Assembly (NCBI GenBank): GCA_965202585.1
Contig: OZ241829.1
Span: 66,898,001 to 66,962,000, forward strand
DNA length: 64,000 nt
DNA from: Thalia democratica
Lineage: Eukaryota
Direction of reading: 5' to 3'
Numbering within the stretch: the stretch's first letter is position 1; each line of letters starts with the position of its first letter. Below the pieces are notes generated by a model, which was not told the DNA's origin, made no database searches, and saw nothing but the letters and a program-made list of their open reading frames with translations. This document shows positions 47,801 to 59,988 of this stretch, piece after piece. Both the position numbers and the translations under genes were made by a program.

Positions 47801-49254
47801 TTTAACATAACTGTTAGTGTTATAAAGGATTTAAATTTCTTTAAATTATTCAAAAACGTTCGTTTTTAATGATATACTATACGAGAAATACTAAACAACT
47901 AATTTTAAAGATGAGTATTTAATAAAAACCAACAAGTTTACAGTTTTAATAGTAAATTTAAATTAATTAAAAGTAAACACTATAACCAAACTTTTTTATT
48001 TTGACAATAATTAGTTTACCTTTGCGTTTATTTAGTTTCATAATATTTGCTTAGTGAAAGTTTACGCCTTAGTAGTTCCTTAGTAACGACGACTTGAATC
48101 TTTAAATTGAAGTACACAGCTTTTGTATTAGTTACAAATTAAGTCATAGTTCTGGTATAACTACTATTTTAACTAGCTCTGCTTATTTTTTTTGTTTTAT
48201 TACACATTTCCATTGTTTTAGAGTCGTTAAAGTTAAAGTATTGTTTTTTTAACACCTTAATAGTGAGCTTTACAATATTTTATAGTTAGTTTTTGTACTT
48301 TTAACAGCAGTATTGTGAGAGAGTATAGTGAGCTAAATATAAAGTTTAAAAATTTAAACAAGTATAGAGTAATACGGCAACTCCTTTAATTGTAAAAATT
48401 GTTAAAAAACTATTGTTAAAAATAGAAAAGAAAACTGAAAAACATATATCATATAATTAAGAATTATTTTTAGTTTAAAGCTTTTTTATATCAGTTCTTA
48501 ATCAATTGTTAACTTAAAAGATATATATTTATTAAAACCATAAATAAAATTTGAAATTTATTCGTAATGTAGTATGTTTAAAGCATTATTAACCAACTTA
48601 TATTACATTAACTTTAGCTAATAACAGTATAAAAGGAAATAAGTTTATGTCAAACAAAATTCAATCAATATGCTAAATGAAATTTTTCTTCATCAATCAG
48701 TTAGTGCTAATAGAGGACTATTTGTGATTATCGTGAGTTTACTTACAAGTACTTATCGACTAATTTTCATCATAACTTTTTAATGTTTACTGACAAAAAT
48801 CTTTTTTTTTAGTTTACAAATTTACAAAAAAAAAAAACATTGGTAGCAAAAAAGGAAGTGATTTTCTAGTCATTAAAGATGATATAAAATATCTTTTATA
48901 GAGAATTGAAATCACGAAGTTTTCTGAAACAAAAAAAAAATCGTATCAATTTAAATTATTCCTAGTATAACTTTTTTATTGTTTTATTATTAAATGAACG
49001 AAATAAATAGTTTTTACGTGTTAATTCAGAAATAAATATTTGTAAAATAGTATTGAAGTAAACTATTAGTATAAAAACAACTGTTTACTTTTTTACAAGC
49101 TCTTTTTCAAAACTTATAGTAAGATAAATTTTACTTTTAAGAACATTCCGCCCAAATGCTTTAACTAAAAGCTTAAAGTTAAAAAGAATTTTTACCTAAA
49201 AACAAAACAAGTTAAATTATAACATTAAGATTGAATCTGTGGCAAAGTTTACAT

Positions 49255-52200
49255 CAGAGTTTCCCAAAGTGGGCGATATCGCCCCCCTGGGGGCGATTTT
49301 AGTATTTTGGGGGGCGATAATTAGTAAGGGGGCGAAAGGGTGGGCGATAACTAGTAAGGGGGCGAAAAGGGGGCGATTTTAAAATTTTGAGTTGTCATAA
49401 GATTTTTACTTTTTTTCTTGCTATTTTACTATTTTTAGCTTGCTATGAAATTATTTGACCCTGAGGTAAAACTTAAACAAAAAAGTTTATTTTATTTATG
49501 AAAAAAAAAGAAAAAAATTCTAGTGCTCATGACTCCTACTTTCAAGTAAATACTATATTTACATTTATATATTTGCATATTTAACAATTACATATATCCT
49601 AGACGATTGGAATCCCTCTCACTATTTGTTATTTTGGGTTATAAATGGTTTGTAAAAATCTATGTTATCTATTACTAACTATCACCTCATAATATTTCCA
49701 GTTGCTTTTTGAAAAGTCACTAAGTTAGACTAAGAAATAAAACTATACAGGGTTGCCAATTTACCTAGAAACCTGGAAAAACCTAGAATTTGACAATTTA
49801 AGCAAAAAAAAACCAGGAAAAAATTTGGAATTTTTAACAATTTTAACATATTAAGTAGTAAAATTTAGATTTGACATAAAAAAGCTATCATATAGATAAA
49901 AGTATGGATCTCTTCGAGGCAAATACTTTTGAAGTAAACGACTCACAGGAAACCTTCTCAGACTTACAAACTGACCTTGAACTTAAAGTAAATTCTTCCA
50001 AAGAACGATATGAAAGCTTTTGAACTCAACAAAAACTAAGGCAAAAGTATCCAATCATTTAAGAGGAATTTAGATTGTTGTTTATATTTTTTCCTTCTAG
50101 CTATGTTGTTAAGAAAGCTTTCTGTTCAGTTATCAAGATCTTGAGCAAAAGGTCTAATCTAGATATTTTAAAGGAGGTGACTTAAGGCTCTATTTTACTA
50201 ATTAAGAATCAGATTAGAAAAACTTGCAAGCAGTCAAATTCCTCATCCTTCACATTATATTAGACTTCAGTAGCAGACATTATTTTATGAAAGTTTTTTA
50301 ATTTTATTTGATCTTTTGATGTATTTCTTATTTAACCTGGTTTGTATTGTATTTAAGTAGTCTTTTTATAATAACAACTTTATTAAGCTATTTATTCTAC
50401 AACAGGTTTGCATAATGCCTAATAAATATTATTTACGGTAGACTTCCTTTTAAGTTCGCAGTTTTTACCAAAATAAAAGTGCAAATTTATATTTTCTTAA
50501 ATTTAACTAAAGTAAAGTCTATTACTAACTAAATATTAATAAAACAAAATATACATAATATTTAATAGCTTATATAGAACTTTTTTTTATGAAAGTTTGT
50601 TTTATGTTTTAGTGGATTTCATGTTTATTCACAACATCATTGCATATAACATATTGAAACTTGTCATTTTGTAAAAAAAAATATGGTAATAATTTTTTGA
50701 GTTTGCACTTTTTGATTTTTTTTAAAGTGCGAACTCAGGCGGAAGTCTACTATATTTATTAAATGGTTTATGTTTTAAAGATTTTAATAATTTTATTTTG
50801 ACCTGGTTAATTTTGTAGTTAATGTTCGTTGTTTTACATTATACTAAAAGTTTTTATAGCATAGTGATTAAAATATTTGTTTGAAAGACCTTTATTTGAC
50901 AGGTTTTTGTTATCACTAGTTTAATCTGTATACAACTTATATCACTATAAAACTATTATCTGATTGTAATATTTTGACAACCATTAAAGTTTTTATTTAT
51001 AAAAAGATTCTGTTTTTTGTTTTATCTTAATTCAATATATATTAGCAATTAGAATATACTTAGTTTATTTTAATACTTCAACACTAGCTTTTAGTTTTTC
51101 ACTATTTTCCTCTGTTAAATTATTGTAGGCTAATAGCTAGAAAAATAACTTTTTAAACAGAATTAAATAAGCAATCAAAAAGACTGCTACAGTTACAAAA
51201 CAAAATTTAAACCTAGTTAAAAGTCTTTTTTAATTGATTACTTTCTGTTCACAGAATTAATTGTAAAACATTTAATTTTTTTTTGAATTTAAATAAAGAA
51301 CAAAAAAGTTAGAATTAAGGTTTAGTTCCCTAAAGATTATTCCAAGTCAGTGCTATTTCATGGTATTCTCCTACAAAACAAATAGTTTAAAAAGTTAAAA
51401 ATTAAATTTTTAACTTTACAACTAACTTGCTTACAATATATCTTAGCATTGAAATTAGTAAATTTACTACATTAACTGAAGCTGTTGATGAAACCACTTT
51501 TCATGTGAGATAATCAACCAGTCGGTCAAACTTCCTTTAACTAGATCAGAAATAATGTTTTAATATTTATTTCATTATGTGTAAAATAGACTATTAATTC
51601 TTTTATAGTTTTTTAATCTCTGGTATAGATATTTTAAAAAGCCTATTTATAAAGTAATTTATGTATTTTGTGCGGCTTAAATAAGTTACTTAGTATGAAC
51701 TTTTAAATGTCCGAAATTTGTTATTTGAGATATTATTAAAATGTCAGGTTTAAGTTAAGATTTCAGGTGGGTAACGTACGGCTCAGATCCAGTCGCAGAT
51801 CAAGTCGAATTTCGACCCACTAAGTAAATTGATAACTACTTGTGCAAAATAAATAAAATTTAGTTTTTTGATATTTAATATTTTGGTATACGCTTTCATT
51901 TCGTTTTCAGTTCACAAAAGTATTTCCTAGATCACAATAATACTAAATCATTTTATTACAATTTTGCTCGAGTTTTTTAATTTTCTTATTTGTAATTTTC
52001 TAAATCATGCAGCCCGCAATTACATTTTCTAACGAGTTGAAAATAGAAAATATTTTTTAGTAAATATGAATTGCTGACTACAAAAGTTGTCCACCACTGA
52101 CCTAAAAGTTTCAATACTTTCAAAACAGATCATATTTAAACAGGATTGATTACAGATTACTCAAGGCTTTTTAATAATTAAGTATTTTAATACACTTTAC

Positions 52201-52431
52201 TGGGCTTCTGAGAAAATAACTGTAAATTATTTTCTCAAGCCCTGTAAACTACTTTGAACACAAAAGTGCGTGCATAAGAAGTACAAGACTAAATTACATT
52301 TCGAACACAACTTTTTTTAGCTCAAAAGTTTGTACTCAAAAGAAAAACTACTTTGTAAAATCGTGGGGGGCGATTTTTTTTTCAAGTTACTGAAAAGGGG
52401 GCGATTTAGTAAATGAGTTTGGGAAACCCTG
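49255..52431 (+). mobile_element. Internally deleted hAT (Buster/Charlie-type) transposon with nested insertions
   Basis: TIR CAGAGTTTCCCAAA / TTTGGGAAACCCTG, perfect 8-bp TSD GTTTACAT, subterminal GGGGCGA repeats. Transposase dimerisation-domain remnant at about 49900-50260 (FPSSYVV.KAF...GDLRLY...QIPHPSH). Confidence 0.9.
49748..49895. mobile_element. Partial inverted copy of the CAGGGTTGCCAC MITE nested in the hAT element
   Basis: CAGGGTTGCCAATTTACCTAGAAACCTGGAAAAACC is the reverse complement of the family's right end. Confidence 0.75.
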
Positions 52432-52951
52432 GTTTACATTTTAGTTAAGCTCCAAAATCAAAGAACAACACAAATAATAATAAAAAAAAATTGTATGTAG
52501 CTTTCTATTTTCTTCTAGTTATTTTTAGGTAAAAATTTGTTTTAACTATAAGTTTTTATATAAAGCATTTAGGTGGGATTTAAAATTTTCATAGCTATTA
52601 CAAGCACAAGATTGTTTAATTTTTCAATAGTTACGTCACCATTAAAATAAGCTACCTTAAATTGGACCTCAATTTTAAGCTCACTTTATTAATCACATTT
52701 TTGCTTAAGCAGTGTTTAATTTGTAATTGAAAAAACTGAGAAAGCTACGTAAAGCTTTTATTATTATTGTTTTTATATTGATTTTAAAACTCAACTAAAA
52801 ATTAAACTTTACCTTAAACTCAATTTTAATATTAAAATTTGATTTGTTTAGTTCTTTAATAAAAATTTTGAGTAAACATTTGGTTTTATTTTAATTAATT
52901 GTTTAAATGCTATTTTCCATGAATGTAACATATATTTTTATATTTATTTAA

Positions 52952-52986
52952 GCACTGACGAGATCTTTGACCGAAACTTAGTTTGT
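52952..52986 (+). ncRNA. Candidate minimal hammerhead ribozyme (Penelope-type)
   Basis: GCA-CTGACGA-GATC TTT GACC-GAAAC TTA GTT|TGT: intact core, 3-bp stem I, one mismatch in stem II, minimal stem III. Confidence 0.55.
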
Positions 52987-53134
52987 AAAATAAGTTCTTG
53001 AAAGAATAAGTTCATTATTTCTCCTCCAGTAGTTGAGATCTCTCTAGTTGATTTCTTAAAACCAAAACATACAATATTAATTTGACTAATTTAAGTTCTA
53101 GTTATAAAACAATTAAAACGATTATTAATAACAG

Positions 53135-55104
53135 AATTTAGGAGCATTTGACGTTCAACATTTCTCAAATAACTGTAATGATGTAGAAAACCTGAAAAGT
53201 CTGGCAAATCATTTGAGGTGTGAGTGTTACGTTTATTCCCCGAAAGAAGCTTTCACAAGTGCGAGTAGGAAGCGTTTCACTAAAAACTACTTGCTTGAAG
53301 GTTTTGATTTAAGTGTTGTGATAAGTTAAAAAGTCATATTGAGTTTTGTAAAAAATTTTGTAGCAACTAAAACAAAAATGAAAACTTAATTAGTTGTAAT
53401 AAAAAAAAAATAGAGGTTACACAGTAGGTACAGACTAATTTTCTGGTTGACATTGCAAGAAAAAGAAAGTTTTTGAGGTACCAGAACTTTCACGTAAATT
53501 CCTTCGTTGAGCATGTATTAAAAAAAGAAACTTTAAAAACAAGAAAAGAGATTTTCAAACATCTTTAACAAAAATATAAATAAATGAGAGCTAATAAATA
53601 CTAAAAAATTAACTTAGAGCACGTCAAAATGTTTATGTTTCTAAAAATTTTAATTTTAGCTAGATAAAATCTATTCTTGCGTGTGCTTGTTTTTTTTTAA
53701 GATAAAAAACACGCATCCGCATAAGTTTTCTGTCGACAGGCTGAATTTGGGCCGCAGGTTGTATTTTCACTTCTATTTTTAACTGATGGTTTCAAAATTA
53801 AAATATTCTAAATTATTTATCCATCATAAACGTAAAAAGAACCGGAACAACTTTAGACTTCACATAAGTAATTGAGTCAAAGTGTAATGAGTTTTAAATT
53901 TGTTATAAGTTTTTGCGTATTGTGTGTTTATATATACCACTCAACTTAAAATAACAATACACTTTTATACAACTTTTAGAAACTGTTTCTCAATAACTTT
54001 TAAAATGTTATTTCTAGTTACAAAGTATATCGTTGACAAACTTAAAGAGGGAAAGCATTTCAGCTGCCTGATAGCAGTTATAATAGCAAATAGTGAGCAT
54101 GCAAGATCTAAGAAAGCTCTCTCGTTCTTTGATAATTCAACAAGTAGAATGGACTTGTACTTGAACGATCTGACTGAAGCTTTTACTAAAAATAATTTTC
54201 CTTGTTTTGTACGAAAACCGAAAGTATTTTTTGTTTATGTGAGTTGCTTTTTATGTCGCTGCATGTCATTAGTCATAACTTTAGTTCTAAATTATCTTAA
54301 AGATAAATGAATTCAATTTTTTTTTAAACGCTAAGGCACCTGAAAAAGTGAGAGCCCAAGAAGGCGGGATTCTCAACCCTGGTTACGTAGAATTCCCGAT
54401 TATACTACCTAGAGATGAAGAGTTTTTCCTGTGCATATCAAGACCTTATGGTATCAAAATAATAAGTTATATAAAACTTTCTTAAACAGTAACGTTTTCA
54501 TTAGTTTGTTTGTAAATATAAAACTTGTTCTCTTATATTGGAAGCTTTAATGGAAACTAAAACATATCTTGTTCTAATAGAAGGAGCCGCTTTGATAAGT
54601 GAAAGAAACAGACAATCACATTTCATCTCTCGACTTTGCAGTATAATTACAGATGCTAATATAAGAATAAATATTTTCCAAGTAAATTATAAATTTTCTT
54701 AAACTCCTATGATATAAAAACATTGTTTGAGAATGAGTTATTGAGTTCAGCTTTAAATAAACAATAAGAAGTTAAATACAAAAACAATAATTATTTAATC
54801 GGAAACACTATTTTTTTGGTTTAAACTTAATTTAAACATGTTATACCATTTTATTACTTTTAGATTTAAGTTATAGGGTATAAATAATTTAATTTAAATG
54901 CTTATTAAACCCGTCTTTCTGCTTCAGTTTTATACATATTTATTACTTATATTTTATTTTGTGTAGGTAATGATTATATTGCAAAATGAAACAAATGAAC
55001 ATAGTGAAAGTCGAATCAGAGATTTAGGTCTAGAAGGTCGTTTTGTACCCGCTCCTTTTAGATATGTGAATTCTCTAACACATGTTCTAACTTTCAACAA
55101 CTGA
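53135..55104 (+). CDS. Caspase-fold protein 1, predicted catalytically inactive (5' exon not found)
   Basis: Exons 53135-53300, 54018-54238, 54336-54450, 54581-54681 and 54967-55104 are all GT-AG, open and phase-compatible (1,0,1,0). Motifs: DVENLKSLANHL, FSCLIAVIIANS (SHG site), KPKVFFVY|APEK (QACRG site), LPRDEEFFLCIS, SHFISRLC, YVNSLTHVLTF*. Confidence 0.8.
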
Positions 55105-56458
55105 AAGCATATCGAGTATTAGAATATATAAACAAGAAGCTGAAATCAATTTTGAAACATTTGTATTTACTGTTTGCCATAAAAAATTAGAAAACTATAA
55201 TTTTATTTTTGCTTTTAGTCACACTGTCATAAACAACTATTTCTTAAAGTACCTCTTATTATATTTTTACTTACTTATAGTTTTAAAATTAAAATCAAGA
55301 TAAGAAATTGATAAAGTTTTATTTGAAATTATGTTAAAATCTTTCTGTATAATCTCAATTGTTAATAAGGCTTATTTTTGCTCGTTCATACATTTGTACA
55401 TATAGTTGCGCATCAAATAATTGTAAGTATATAGTTAAATGATAGTTAAATTTCATAGAAAGTTGCTTGTAAGAAAAACACTTACAAAATGCATTACACC
55501 TACCAAGTAAAAATTTGTATATTTATATTATAATTTCAGAGATATTGTTGTAAAAAAATTGAAAACGTATTTACGTAATGGAAGAAGGTTTGGTTTTGTT
55601 GTCTCGTAAAATTTTACCTTAAAATGTAGTAAAGTTTATTAGTTTAACTAAACACTTTAAAATTTAAATAAATTTTAATATATATTTGTCAATTTATTCG
55701 GTTTTTTCTCTATGTTTACTGTTCTTACCATGAGCACATGACAAACCGTTAAATGGTATCATAAATCACTTATTTGTTTAACAGATTTATTTGTTTGAGA
55801 CGTTTTTATCGTCTGAATGAACTTGATTGTGTTTATTTATAAAACACTTTATGATTTTTTTTATATTTAACAGGTAAGCTTTCTTACTATGAAGTAATTT
55901 GTGCTTTAGCTTGTAGATTAAAGAACTTAATCATCAAGTACATAACAGTAAGTTACATTTTAAAAGCTTTTTATATTTACAAACAATATTTAGATTATTT
56001 GTTTAAGGTAAATATTAACCAAAACCTAATACTCAAAGAAGTTATTAATAGTTTTTTTGTGATCAAACTTTGTTTTTCTTATTCAAGTTGTAATTTTACT
56101 ATATTAAGTTGGATTTACTCTTACTGTATAACAGACTAATGAAGTATTTAAATAACTTACTGCTTAAAGTTTTGAATATATACTTTCTTCCTTAATTTTT
56201 CAATTTGTATTTCAAAAAAACACAGAGTATGTTGATAGTTACTGCAATAAAGGATAAAAAGTACACTCAAAATACAAAAAGGTAAAATTATCGTAATTTT
56301 AAAAAAGTTATTTGGGCTGTAAATTCAAAATATAGTTTTCAACTTAACTACTAACTTATTATTACAAAGTTTTGAAGTTGAACGTAAAAATCAATTAAAA
56401 ACCTAACTATCATTAAGTAAAATCTTTTACTTCAAATAAGTTTATTTTTCAAAAACAG

Positions 56459-57939
56459 TGGATTAAATGGCAGATTAATCAAAGAAAAAACCGAAAAAAT
56501 TAACATATACCAACTAAATCGTCAGCTTAAAACTGCAATGGATAGTCAAGACAAAAACGAAATAAGTACGAAGTTCAAAGGAACATTTTTTACTTTTTCC
56601 ATGGTAGTGAGTTTTGAAATATTTAACTAGTATAAAACTAGTAATGTACTTTTTAAAATATTGTGTAAAACGATACAGTGAATTTCTGTAAATTTTAAAA
56701 ATTTTGGTTTATAACTAACATTTAACTATTAAAACTGACGGAAAAAAATTTCCATTTTAGGTCCCACAAGAACTTGATATTGTACAAGATTTTGAGCAAG
56801 AATACTTCTCTGAAATTGCTAATTTGTTTGGTTTTGAAACCATAAGAAAAACTAAATGCACGAACGTTAATGAAATAATCGAGGCACTTCATCACTGTAG
56901 TTTTTTAAAACTGTTTATTACATGTTTTATAATCTAGCTGTTTTAAGTAAAATTTCTCTATTAAGAACTAATTTACAATATTTACCTATGTTTTGTTTAC
57001 TTAAGTGTAAACTAAAAGATATTTCAACATCAAACAAAATTTTAATTTAAAGTAAAATGAGTTAAGATATCAAAACATCTAACATCTTAAATAAAAAGTT
57101 TTTTTACTAAAAACAGTTTTATTTATATTTAGATAATACAAAGGCTGATAGTCACGACGCTTGCTTTGCGCTGGCTTTGATAGTTCATGAAAAAGACACT
57201 CGTTTTACTAAAAGGGGCGGAATGAAGCAAATATTTGATGAGTTGTTAACCTTGAGAATTCCAAAAGATATTCCAAAATTAGTATTTATAGAGGTTTAAC
57301 TTTTAGTTTTGTGAAAAAAAAATTTAAACCTAACTTATTTTCTCTGAAGATTAAGCAATTATAAAAAATTAAAACTGTTAATCAGTTTCAAAAACATTGT
57401 TCATTGTAATAAATTGATTTAATTAATGTAGGTAATTTCTAATAAAAATTTTATATAAATAAAGTTTTTTTTTTTTTATGCAGTCATTTAGAGGAGGAAA
57501 CTACGAAACAGAACCAGGTTCAATAAATGACAGTATTTTAAGCTACGAAATGAAAAACAGTTTTGTTGCTTATTCAACTATAAACAGTTAGTTTTTGTGT
57601 TTAGATTAAAAATGTTTTTTTTTAATTTATTTAATACAACTCTTGTTTAAGTTAAAAATTAAAAAATTATTTTTATAAATAACTGTATAATATATGTCTT
57701 ACCTTACAAGAACAACTAAATATCTTCTTAGACTTTTTGTAAACACCTACTTCTTATACTTAGCTTTAAATTATTATTTTTAAAAACTCTATAATTTATA
57801 ACAAACAGATAAAATCTTTAGCCAAAATAGAATCTATTGTTCAAAGTTCACTAAGATTTTGTTAGATGAGGTCAAAAAGAGTGGATTTAATTCCGAAATT
57901 CATAAAGTTTCTGCTAGTTTTAATCATTTAATTACATAA
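56459..57939 (+). CDS. Caspase-fold protein 2, predicted catalytically inactive (ends uncertain)
   Basis: Exons 56459-56606, 56761-56896, 57133-57293, 57484-57586 and 57809-(57939) are open and phase-compatible (0,1,0,1). Motifs: FSEIANLFGFE, CTNVNEIIEAL, HDACFALALIVHE, IPKLVFIE|SFRGG, NSFVAYST, SKFTKILL. Candidate 5' exons at 55540-55587, 55785-55828, 55874-55947; candidate last exon at 59351-59536 (KQEQSVIISTLKIIFY). Confidence 0.8.
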
Positions 57940-58153
57940 CTAAATATTGTACTTCTAATTTCAAATTATTTCATTTACCTTATATATCTAAGTTAGAACA
58001 AAAAAAAATTTTGTTTTATTTAGCATTAAAAATATAGTCTTAAACAAAAACATTAAAATGTTTTTAAAAAAGTACGGAACAAAAAAAAGATTAACATATT
58101 GGTAGTCTGAATACTATTTATATTTAAACTATTTATAGTGAAAATCAGTTGTA

Positions 58154-58679
58154 CTTCACAACACGACCATCAACAACAGCATTCAAGCCAACCTACAACC
58201 AGTTTCGTCCTCATTAGGGCTCATTAGCTACGCGTAGTCGCGAATAATCGTTGTTGAGGTCTAGGTAAGCAGGTTTAAGTACATAAGCGATTAAGCGACC
58301 GTTTGTGGGTAAGGTCCGAAATATTATTGTTGTTTGTTGTATAGTGTAATTTATTTTTTTATTATTTATGGCGTCAAACATCACAACTTTGTTGATGATG
58401 GCCGTAAAAGTAAACGGCTAAAACTGACAAAACGAGCGTAGACTAATATCTCACAATATGCTGACAAAATCTGTTGACCTTGAGTTGTGAACGATTTAGC
58501 TGCGTCAATTTTTCAGACTTTACCTACAAACGGTCAATTCAGCGCTTATGTACTCAAACTTGCTTGGGTTAGACATCAACAACGGCTTTTTGCGACAAAG
58601 CCTATATGATGCGACCTAACGAGGTCGAAACTGGTCGTAGATTGTCCCTTTTGCTGTTGTTGTTGGTCGTGTGGTAAAG
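58154..58679. mobile_element. Penelope-like terminal-repeat remnants in inverted orientation, each with a degenerate hammerhead
   Basis: About 75-bp imperfect inverted repeats (CTTCACAACACGACCATCAACAACAGCA...CCAGTTTCGTCCTCATTAGG vs CCTAACGAGGTCGAAACTGG...TGCTGTTGTTGTTGGTCGTGTGGTAAAG), both containing GAAACTGGTH|GTAG. Confidence 0.6.
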
Positions 58680-59988
58680 TTATTTATTATTGATGGCGCG
58701 AAACATCTCAATTGTGTTGATGGTCGAAGTAAAAAACTAAATTTTCACAAATTGTTTCAAAAAATGAGTCGTAGTTTTTGCAAGCTGCTTACTATAACGA
58801 ATTTTGTTTATCATAAATAACATGTCATAAAATCTACAGCTACTAACACGAGTTAACAGATCACTTTCAGAAGAAAAATCAACTCGACTTAAGCAATTCT
58901 CCAGTTTTAGAAGTAGCCTGACTAAAGAGTTATATTTTAAAAAGTAGTTTTAATTTAAACGATTATAAACTATCAATATACTCGTTTTATCTTGTCATGA
59001 CACATAAGACGCGTTTTAAATGTTTAATTTTGATAAATGTAAGAAAAGTACCTTTATATGTTATATCAAATTGTGATTTATCTCTAATATAACTTACAGT
59101 TTTTTAATCTAGTTTAATTACTTTGTTTTTGAAATTTTTAAAATTATTTGATTGATTACATTTTGAAAGCCAAACATAAACCACCATTTTTTTTTAACTT
59201 TTAAAAGTAATAAAATTGTATATTAACTTTTTTATAATTTTTAGCTTGTTTATAAATGATATGCAAATGCTTTTTTCCATCTATCCTGCCACTAAAATTT
59301 TGTTTGTATTTTTGTTTAATCAAATGTTTTTTTTTTTTTTGCTTTTATAGTTAAAATACAAACAAGAGCAATCAGTCATAATTTCAACACTTAAAATCAT
59401 TTTTTATCAACTAACACTGAAATCCAATTTACAAGTTGGTTCGTTTTTATCTCTAATTGCGCCTTTTTCAAACCTCAAACGTAAAATACATCACTCTCAC
59501 TGCGAAATGTTGTGTTTATTTGTACAAACAATGTAACTACTATTTTCTGAATGTAGCTAATAATTAATTTCGTGTACAATATGATTTCTTAATACTTTAT
59601 TTCTAATTTTAAGTACTACTTGGTTATTTTTATACACATTAACACTCTTTGAAAATGTATTAGTGATTTTGTAGAGAGATACGTAGTTTGCTTTTTCAAT
59701 TTATGATGAGTTCTTTACTTTAATTCTACTTGTAAACTTCTAAGAAATTTATAAATAAACACCGCAAGTTAAAAGTTGATGTAGACTCGCATAATATAGT
59801 AGTATAAGTTAAACAAACAAAATTTTAGAAAAAAACAAAAGATTTTCTTAAACACACAGAGTTATATTCAATTTTTTGTTTATGCTGACTTGAACTTTTA
59901 CTGACTCGTTTGCAAAAACCTGTTTTGTAGATTTCTCGTGGCAATACTCTTAATCTTTATAGTTCTTAGTTCTTCTGTATCAATAGAG

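Follow-up and report, generated by a model that had tools for sequence, protein, structure and literature searches.

Why would a genome keep, side by side, two caspase-like genes that have both lost the residues for proteolysis? This question is raised by a 64,000-nucleotide stretch of the Thalia democratica genome (contig OZ241829.1, positions 66,898,001 to 66,962,000; G000:C5:66898001-66962000 of an 802 Mb assembly), referred to below as the window, and by the two neighboring genes that it carries, termed gene 1 and gene 2. Judged by their sequences, both genes are caspase homologues, and the complete His–Cys dyad of active caspases is present in none of their paralogues and copies. The explanation that we consider probable is that they are two catalytically dead caspase-fold genes under selection, derived from an old tandem duplication and later copied as a block to give four pairs. 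According to this explanation, a prodomain-less caspase gene, most similar to caspase-3/7, would have been duplicated in tandem long ago; both copies would have lost the protease chemistry while purifying selection kept caspase-fold proteins of about 267 amino acids (aa); and the two-gene unit would then have been copied as a block, yielding the four pairs. The evidence consists of caspase-type sequence and predicted fold, altered active sites in all copies, open frames with a deficit of nonsynonymous changes at four loci, and introns that the two genes have in common.

Structure and expression of the two genes

Relatives were sought with the 73-aa exon 3 of gene 1 against 1.8 billion representatives, which returned four matches. 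One of these is P0002, a 267-aa protein 85% identical to gene 1 and encoded on the 1193-nucleotide contig L029. The nearest sequences from outside the genome are intron-less contigs from JGI environmental samples, together with one Logan assembly; as they lack introns, they are taken as transcripts of related species. L029 covers the window in six contiguous blocks at 82–91% identity (48576–48732, 53135–53300, 54018–54238, 54336–54450, 54581–54681, and 54967–55423) and confirms five of five junctions of gene 1 as well as its start and stop. The gene has six exons, spans 48670–55104 on the forward strand and encodes a product of 267 aa; the introns are of the canonical GT–AG type, in a window of 25% G+C. 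Its exons are the following.

48670–48732, forward strand: exon 1 of gene 1, with the ATG; 21 aa ending in strand beta-1 (GLFVII); donor GTGAGT.
53135–53300, forward strand: exon 2 of gene 1, beginning in phase 0 and leaving one extra base at its end; AG acceptor and GT donor.
54018–54238, forward strand: exon 3 of gene 1, with VIIANSEH at the SHG site (His to Asn); junction confirmed by L029.
54336–54450, forward strand: exon 4 of gene 1, beginning APEKVRAQEG in place of ACRG (Cys to Pro) and ending in the beta-5 strand FFLCISRPY.
54581–54681, forward strand: exon 5 of gene 1, SERNRQSHFISRLC, the counterpart of SWRN..GSWFIQSLC in the alignment with PDB sequences; bases 659–764 of L029 match at 91.5%.
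54967–55104, forward strand: exon 6 of gene 1, with the TGA stop at 55102–55104; bases 761–1193 of L029 correspond to 54967–55423.

At the 5′ end, the N-terminus of P0002 matches exon 1 at 81% identity (tblastn), and the 5′ untranslated region (UTR) reaches back to at least 48576 (bases 1–157 of L029 correspond to 48576–48732). Exon 2 is matched by bases 158–323 of L029 at 90% and is kept at all three paralogous loci—designated A, B, and C, with W for the window itself—and the paralogues of exon 3 are 75%, 56%, and 48% identical. The stop codon is kept at loci A and B and in the transcripts, and the 3′ UTR extends to at least 55423, that is, over about 0.3 kb. Two further contigs, L031 and L032, likewise confirm the structure of the gene 1 copy at locus B. 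The gene 1 type is thus expressed as spliced mRNA in relatives. Beyond its gene 1-type transcript, L031 continues (949–2460) into unrelated sequence with an open reading frame (ORF) matching PF20256 (MoCoBD_2); locus B has no match for this portion, so that L031 probably represents an assembly chimera.

Gene 2 begins further downstream on the same strand. It has seven exons between 56229 and 58947 and a product of 268 aa.

56229–56281, forward strand: exon 1 of gene 2, with the ATG (MLIVTAIKDKK...); the least certain exon.
56459–56606, forward strand: exon 2 of gene 2, closing with strand beta-1 (KGTFFTFSMV); at all four loci it is open and can be spliced.
56761–56896, forward strand: exon 3 of gene 2, the helix–strand region with ANLFGFETI; kept at A, B, and C and aligning to the caspase domain of L001, a caspase of the same genome described below.
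57133–57293, forward strand: exon 4 of gene 2, with CFALALIVHEK (His kept; flanking Ser and Gly lost), ending PKLVFIE.
57484–57586, forward strand: exon 5 of gene 2, beginning SFRGG in place of ACRG (Cys to Phe) and ending in the beta-5 strand FVAYSTIN.
57809–57906, forward strand: exon 6 of gene 2, ending EIHK at a GT donor kept at all four loci.
58840–58947, forward strand: exon 7 of gene 2, terminal, LLTRVNRS...KQFSSFRSSLTKELYFKK followed by the stop; AG acceptor; kept at A, B, and C.

The ATG of exon 1 lies 3 nucleotides past an AG, and its phase-2 junction is in frame with exon 2. Locus A has a counterpart of the exon (71%), none was found at locus B, and no search for one was made at locus C. 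Exon 4 is 92% identical at A, 72% at B, and 42% at C. Exon 6 has an alternative acceptor at 57821 that is likewise in frame, and exon 7 was exposed by comparison with a paralogous locus as a conserved block at 58840–58947. Since the exon 6 donor following EIHK is kept at four loci, the TAA at 57937–57939 is most likely intron read-through. A preliminary description of the locus had proposed two multi-exon genes that splice in frame, and its exon blocks reappear in the present models, with canonical introns and open frames. Its limits have shifted. It had placed the start of gene 1 at 53135, 4.4 kb downstream of the ATG exon, and the end of exon 2 at 53219, the first GT, whereas the frame is maintained only if the exon runs to 53300. 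The end of gene 2, which it had rightly flagged as uncertain, is probably not the TAA but the exon that lies 0.9 kb beyond its range. For annotation this means that both genes reach beyond a local reading, gene 1 upstream by its first exon and gene 2 downstream by its last.

A few observations concern the sequence within and around the genes. Between them, at 55873–55950, lies a stop-free block, KLSYYEVICALACRLKNLIIKYIT, flanked by AG and GTAAGT, with weak conservation at locus B (34% over 38 aa). The block lacks an ATG, its frame would continue into exon 1 of gene 2, and it could be 5′ UTR or an alternative exon of that gene. The summed contig depth, about 100–300, jumps to 4,000–34,000 at 58000–58800, within intron 6 of gene 2, and exceeds 150,000 in the bin 53000–53199 (53000–53080); joints and strand switches are numerous, and both segments look like high-copy repeats, probably transposon fragments.

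The arrangement of the genes raises the question of whether both frames might form one transcription unit, be it operon-like, bicistronic, or encoding a single two-domain protein through unrecognised splicing. Order, orientation, and a spacer of 1.1–1.5 kb are kept at W, A, and B, the ATG of gene 2 follows so closely on an AG acceptor, and the weakly conserved open block between the genes would share the frame of gene 2. Against this, the stop codon of gene 1 is conserved and stands after a complete caspase fold; L029 and L032 end in the 3′ UTR 0.13–0.3 kb past this stop rather than running into gene 2; a common leader was not seen at the transcript 5′ ends; and no donor in the last exon of gene 1 has a phase compatible with the 55873 block. 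We therefore give a single unit very little credence and treat gene 1 and gene 2 as separate genes.

Caspase homologues without a catalytic dyad

The Pfam family PF00656 (Peptidase_C14) has a curated cut-off of 21.4 bits, which is exceeded by two full-length relatives of gene 1 (P0002 with 32.4 bits and P0003 with 35.9 bits). Scanned singly, and hence as short queries, the exons of the window each remain below it: exon 3 of gene 1 scores 13.6 bits over profile positions 63–124, exon 7 of gene 2 scores 14.3 bits over positions 203–233, and exon 4 of the gene 2 copy at locus C, again a single exon, scores 14.6 bits over positions 61–124 and likewise falls short of the cut-off. Most other single exons, too short for such a search, were silent against Pfam. 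In the PDB, all 44 of the 44 sequence matches of P0002 (phmmer) are caspases, with caspase-3 and caspase-7 leading. An AlphaFold2 model of P0002 (pLDDT 72, pTM 0.78) is predicted to have the caspase fold, its best 50 Foldseek matches in the PDB being caspases throughout (E 5e-10 to 2e-8, TM 0.5–0.7). In a language-model atlas, 93 of 100 neighbors of P0002 belong to caspase clusters.

For gene 2, a four-sequence profile of exon 7 matches 95 PDB sequences, and the best 60 of the 95 are all C-termini of the caspase-3/7 type (best E 0.012). Single-exon profiles of exons 3, 4, 5, and 6 found no caspase matches in the PDB, and an atlas search with exon 4 gave no usable match. A full-length proxy profile of gene 2 built by way of P0002 was dropped because MAFFT stacked non-homologous exons. 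A hidden Markov model (HMM) of the gene 2 family, made from the four spliced paralogues, was searched against 2927 six-frame ORF fragments from the window and the caspase loci of the genome. The first non-self match is L001 (E 2.6e-7, 27.6 bits), collinear over 185 positions (HMM positions 69–253). The domain order of L001 is DED-DED-Peptidase_C14 (195 bits), and its active-site motifs are THG and QACQG; its 588-aa intron-less ORF (541–2304; G000:C7:48309104-48310867) comprises two DEDs and a complete caspase domain. As an observation in its own right, L001 is a caspase-8-like gene without introns, while the other caspase genes of the genome are split into exons; a DED-DED-caspase also marks the genome as metazoan. 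Neither gene 1 nor gene 2 has a CARD, DED, or DD: in gene 1 only 15 residues precede strand beta-1, which leaves no tandem DED prodomain, and the approximately 55 residues in front of this strand in gene 2 have no Pfam match.

The active sites are altered in different ways. Exon 3 of gene 1 ends KPKVFFVY where caspases have KPKxFxxQ, and in the alignment of P0002 with caspase-3 and caspase-7 from the PDB, YAPEK falls on QACRG. In gene 1, the dyad His is replaced by Asn and the dyad Cys by Pro. All eight full-length gene 1-type sequences compared have YAPEK unchanged, and L012, a genomic contig of another species, reads Y/APEKVRAQEG (the slash marking the intron). The His position varies among gene 1-type sequences (N, S, R, or K). 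In gene 2, the alignment with L001 places the His of LIVHEK on the catalytic His and E-S-F-R-G on Q-A-C-Q-G (FFFQACQG in L001), with Phe on the catalytic Cys; therefore the assignment holds that His is kept and Cys is replaced by Phe. The copies at W, A, and B have LIVHEK and (S/A)FRGG; the copy at locus C has VVQEK and RCHGG, so that Cys is kept and His is lost. As to the Asp-specific S1 pocket, its Gln position is occupied by Tyr in gene 1 and by Glu in gene 2. The Arg of the SWR type is found in some gene 1 copies (SERN) and lost at locus B (SEVN), and no counterpart of it was seen in the alignments of gene 2; the Asp of the inter-subunit linker is not conserved between paralogues, nor are the S1 arginines across the family. 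A further caspase locus of the genome, L009, lacks SHG and reads ISKEK; it is another dead copy. These results bear out what had been proposed for the pair from inspection of the letters, namely caspase homology of both genes—now backed by PF00656, the PDB, and Foldseek for the relatives of gene 1, and by the family HMM with L001 and exon 7 for gene 2—and the loss of the dyad by Asn and Pro in gene 1 and by Phe for Cys in gene 2; the motifs then quoted (VIIANSEH and FFVY/APEK, LIVHEK and FIE/SFRGG) are indeed present.

It could be argued that the proteins are still proteases, either with a non-canonical nucleophile or with a dyad assembled across a heterodimer, for example with the His from gene 2. 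In favor of this, the W, A, and B copies of gene 2 retain the catalytic His, the copy at locus C keeps Cys, not His, and the active-site loops are the best conserved parts of both families. Yet both dyad residues occur together in no copy, the His position of gene 1 varies while its Cys position is invariably Pro, and the Ser and Gly that flank the His of gene 2 are lost. Moreover, the two active sites of a caspase dimer lie far apart, so that a dyad shared across subunits is unlikely. Retained proteolysis is accordingly hardly credible, and catalytically dead caspase-fold proteins remain the preferred reading.

Origin, copies, and selection

The sequences of gene 1 and gene 2 are highly diverged, as had been noted on first inspection: profile–profile comparison (hhalign) aligns the two families collinearly over 204 columns, with an E value of 0.1 and with 3 of 60 column shuffles scoring as high. 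The exon–intron structures correspond. Five introns are common to both genes, in the same order and phase. Three lie at exactly matching residues (Y/APEK and E/SFRG; a codon split after RPY and after TIN; IFQ/VMI and IHK/LLT); the remaining two are offset by no more than three codons between the genes, in stretches that vary in length. Five of five examined caspase-type genes of the same genome (L002–L005 and L009) have a phase-0 intron directly after the Gln of QACxG, and the position and phase of this Q/ACRG intron in the active caspases of the genome are those found in gene 1 and gene 2. From the common introns, with their order and phase, it is concluded that an old tandem duplication of a caspase gene gave rise to gene 1 and gene 2.

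The pair described here is one of four in the genome rather than unique. Whole-genome exon searches located three more pairs, in which order and orientation of the two genes are unchanged.

C4, 78.29 Mb: locus A, a pair of gene 1 and gene 2.
C4, 23.11 Mb: locus B, a pair of gene 1 and gene 2.
C4, 56.04 Mb: locus C, a pair of gene 1 and gene 2.

All modelled exons at the four loci are open and the splice sites are usable, with the exception of one donor at locus B discussed below; for gene 1 at locus C, no exon 1 was found. The introns of W and A can still be aligned, whereas B and C have only exons in common with W; on this sequence comparison, W and A are recent copies. Each of the transcripts from relatives corresponds to a particular copy (L029 to W/A, L031 and L032 to B at 81–94%, and L030 to C), and the split between W/A, B, and C therefore appears to predate those species. 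Copying as part of a transposon is not supported, as W and B, and likewise W and C, have nothing in common outside both genes; terminal repeats were not noticed in the locus alignments, although no repeat search was made. Two further gene 1-type loci are located at C8:16.12 Mb (L018, G000:C8:16117705-16117881) and C1:53.36 Mb (L017, G000:C1:53356950-53357129), with LA(E/R)CEN at the His site and H/APEKVRGQ and H/APELFRAE at the Cys site. All six gene 1-type loci thus have APE(K/L) in place of ACRG, and the family of dead caspases has at least six members of the gene 1 type and four of the gene 2 type.

Selection was assessed by the ratio of nonsynonymous to synonymous divergence (dN/dS), a check for which the preliminary description had called. 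By the method of Nei and Gojobori, the ratio amounts to 0.18–0.39 in 11 comparisons, far from the value near 1 that would have spoken against selection: it is 0.36 for gene 1 and 0.39 for gene 2 between W and A, and 0.25 and 0.21, respectively, between W and B. Nonsynonymous changes are under-represented in every pair tested (Fisher p 2e-4 to 2e-20). Between W and A, introns and spacer differ by 0.15–0.26 (with one outlier of 0.37), or about 0.19, which matches the synonymous proportion of differences (pS) of 0.19, while the nonsynonymous proportion (pN) of 0.07–0.08 lies well below the intron divergence. Over the period that these comparisons cover, the contrasts lead us to reject neutral decay of either gene, and the earlier proposal of selection for a non-proteolytic role is borne out. 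Nor are the open frames a matter of chance: at the base composition of the window a random codon is a stop with a probability of 0.086, and a run of 535 stop-free codons has a probability of about 1e-21. A reading of the genes as decaying pseudogenes is rejected on account of the dN/dS values and of the frames open at four loci.

Several findings nevertheless weigh against two selected genes copied as a block, most of them on the side of gene 2. The direct sequence similarity between gene 1 and gene 2 is, as stated, marginal. L018 and L017 have no gene 2-like sequence within 10 kb downstream; these solitary loci indicate that pairing is not obligatory. At locus B, the donor of gene 2 exon 4 is lost, with CT instead of GT (L024 near 7795, after ...VFIE), so that this copy is either damaged or uses a cryptic donor; splicing at a GT located 12 nucleotides upstream would delete VFIE without a frame shift. 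Pattern scans of metagenome contigs with exon 4/5 motifs and a protein search with an exon 4 profile yielded neither a transcript nor an outside relative of gene 2. Finally, in comparison with a near-identical second sample (run X3), the listed differences include none within exons of gene 1 but six within exons of gene 2 (56261–57892), five of these six being nonsynonymous with the codons read by eye; the list is partial and the comparison is one between DNA contigs of two samples. Three of the nonsynonymous differences—Y12N, Q47L, and S228T—equal the state of locus A, a hint of gene conversion or shared polymorphism; taken together, the strain differences in gene 2 could reflect relaxed constraint or gene conversion in the window copy.

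These findings can be gathered into an alternative in which gene 1 is a working pseudo-caspase and gene 2 of the window a silent or recently relaxed relic that bears the marks of past selection only. Four gene 1-type transcripts against none for gene 2 would then be expected, as would the bias of five nonsynonymous to one synonymous difference within gene 2, with none listed in gene 1, the broken donor at locus B, and the fact that the W–A ratio of 0.39 is the highest of all pairs. On the other hand, seven of seven gene 2 exons are open with intact GT–AG sites, and the W–A pN of 0.083 is less than half of the intron divergence and of pS (Fisher p 2e-4). The agreement of three of the five nonsynonymous differences with locus A fits polymorphism or gene conversion, not decay, and the metatranscriptome searches for gene 2 used only four short peptide patterns. 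We regard such a relic as improbable and retain the explanation by two selected, dead caspase-fold genes.

Possible roles and relation to known pseudo-caspases

How such proteins would act can be approached through the catalytically inactive caspase homologues already described. The best known of these, cFLIP-L, heterodimerises with caspase-8, and cFLIP has been called the only human pseudo-caspase (PMC7586951). Like cFLIP-L (CFLAR), the products of gene 1 and gene 2 would comprise a p20/p10-like domain of the caspase fold that has lost its catalytic residues and has been kept by selection. In contrast to cFLIP-L, which has two N-terminal DEDs and caspase-8/10 as an adjoining paralogue, they have no prodomain, score best against caspase-3/7 in the PDB, and have another dead gene as their neighbor. 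In Aedes aegypti, CASPS18 has been described as a caspase-like decoy of CASPS19 that enhances its paralogue (Bryant et al. 2010, cited in PMC4840389). The resemblance here lies in an effector-type paralogue with a short prodomain that is lineage-specific and lacks catalytic activity, CASPS18 being reported to modulate a paralogous caspase. While CASPS18 is paired with an active paralogue, the present pair consists of two dead genes and occurs in multiplied form, at four loci. An active counterpart close enough in sequence for this type of decoy is absent, since the neighbor is dead and the active caspases of the genome are only distant relatives.

Effector caspases-3/7 (MEROPS C14A) provide the best matches in sequence and fold; like them, the proteins are of about 267 aa and devoid of CARD, DED, and DD, and the C-terminus of gene 2 (LLTRVN...SLTKELYF) resembles that of caspase-3 in LTRVN and LTKELYF. 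They differ from caspases-3/7 in the absence of the His–Cys dyad and in the lack of conservation of the linker Asp and the S1 arginines. CSP-3 and CSP-2 of Caenorhabditis elegans are caspase homologues as well. CSP-3 resembles the small subunit only, whereas gene 1 and gene 2 keep the whole p20 and p10 fold. CSP-3, which has no active site, was reported to be anti-apoptotic; this is disputed, and the phenotype was not reproduced in PMC3591282. Compared with these systems, gene 1 and gene 2 form a lineage-specific, expanded family of pseudo-caspases comparable to cFLIP-L, CASPS18, and CSP-3.

By analogy, the proteins may act without cutting, through the caspase dimer interface, and thereby tune caspase activation, a proposal that we put forward tentatively. 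Partners of each dead caspase would be the other one, active caspases, or both; on this view YAPEK, the invariant loop, and KQFSSFRS, the conserved strand, would serve for binding and not for catalysis. Because of the precedents set by cFLIP-L, CASPS18, and CSP-3, non-catalytic pairing via the dimer interface is the most likely mode. Both genes have been retained after each block duplication, which fits a matched heterodimer or shared regulation. In its strictest form, the proposal would make gene 1 and gene 2 an obligate, non-catalytic heterodimer whose YAPEK and H..FRGG loops bind a ligand or an active caspase; if this were true, the need for matched subunits would explain why the pair was copied and retained as a unit four times. 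We consider this form rather unlikely, and we know of no described heterodimer of two dead caspases.

Pseudo-caspases are few and mostly known from cFLIP. The present family, under purifying selection and with a YAPEK replacement that has stayed unchanged across deep divergence, shows the caspase fold put to a use other than cleavage in a marine invertebrate. That two different dead paralogues were repeatedly retained together turns the idea of a heterodimeric pseudo-enzyme into a concrete and testable hypothesis, and the family offers clean material for asking which surfaces of a caspase matter once catalysis is gone. As a whole, the four-fold preservation of the pair suggests a lineage-specific, non-proteolytic caspase module.

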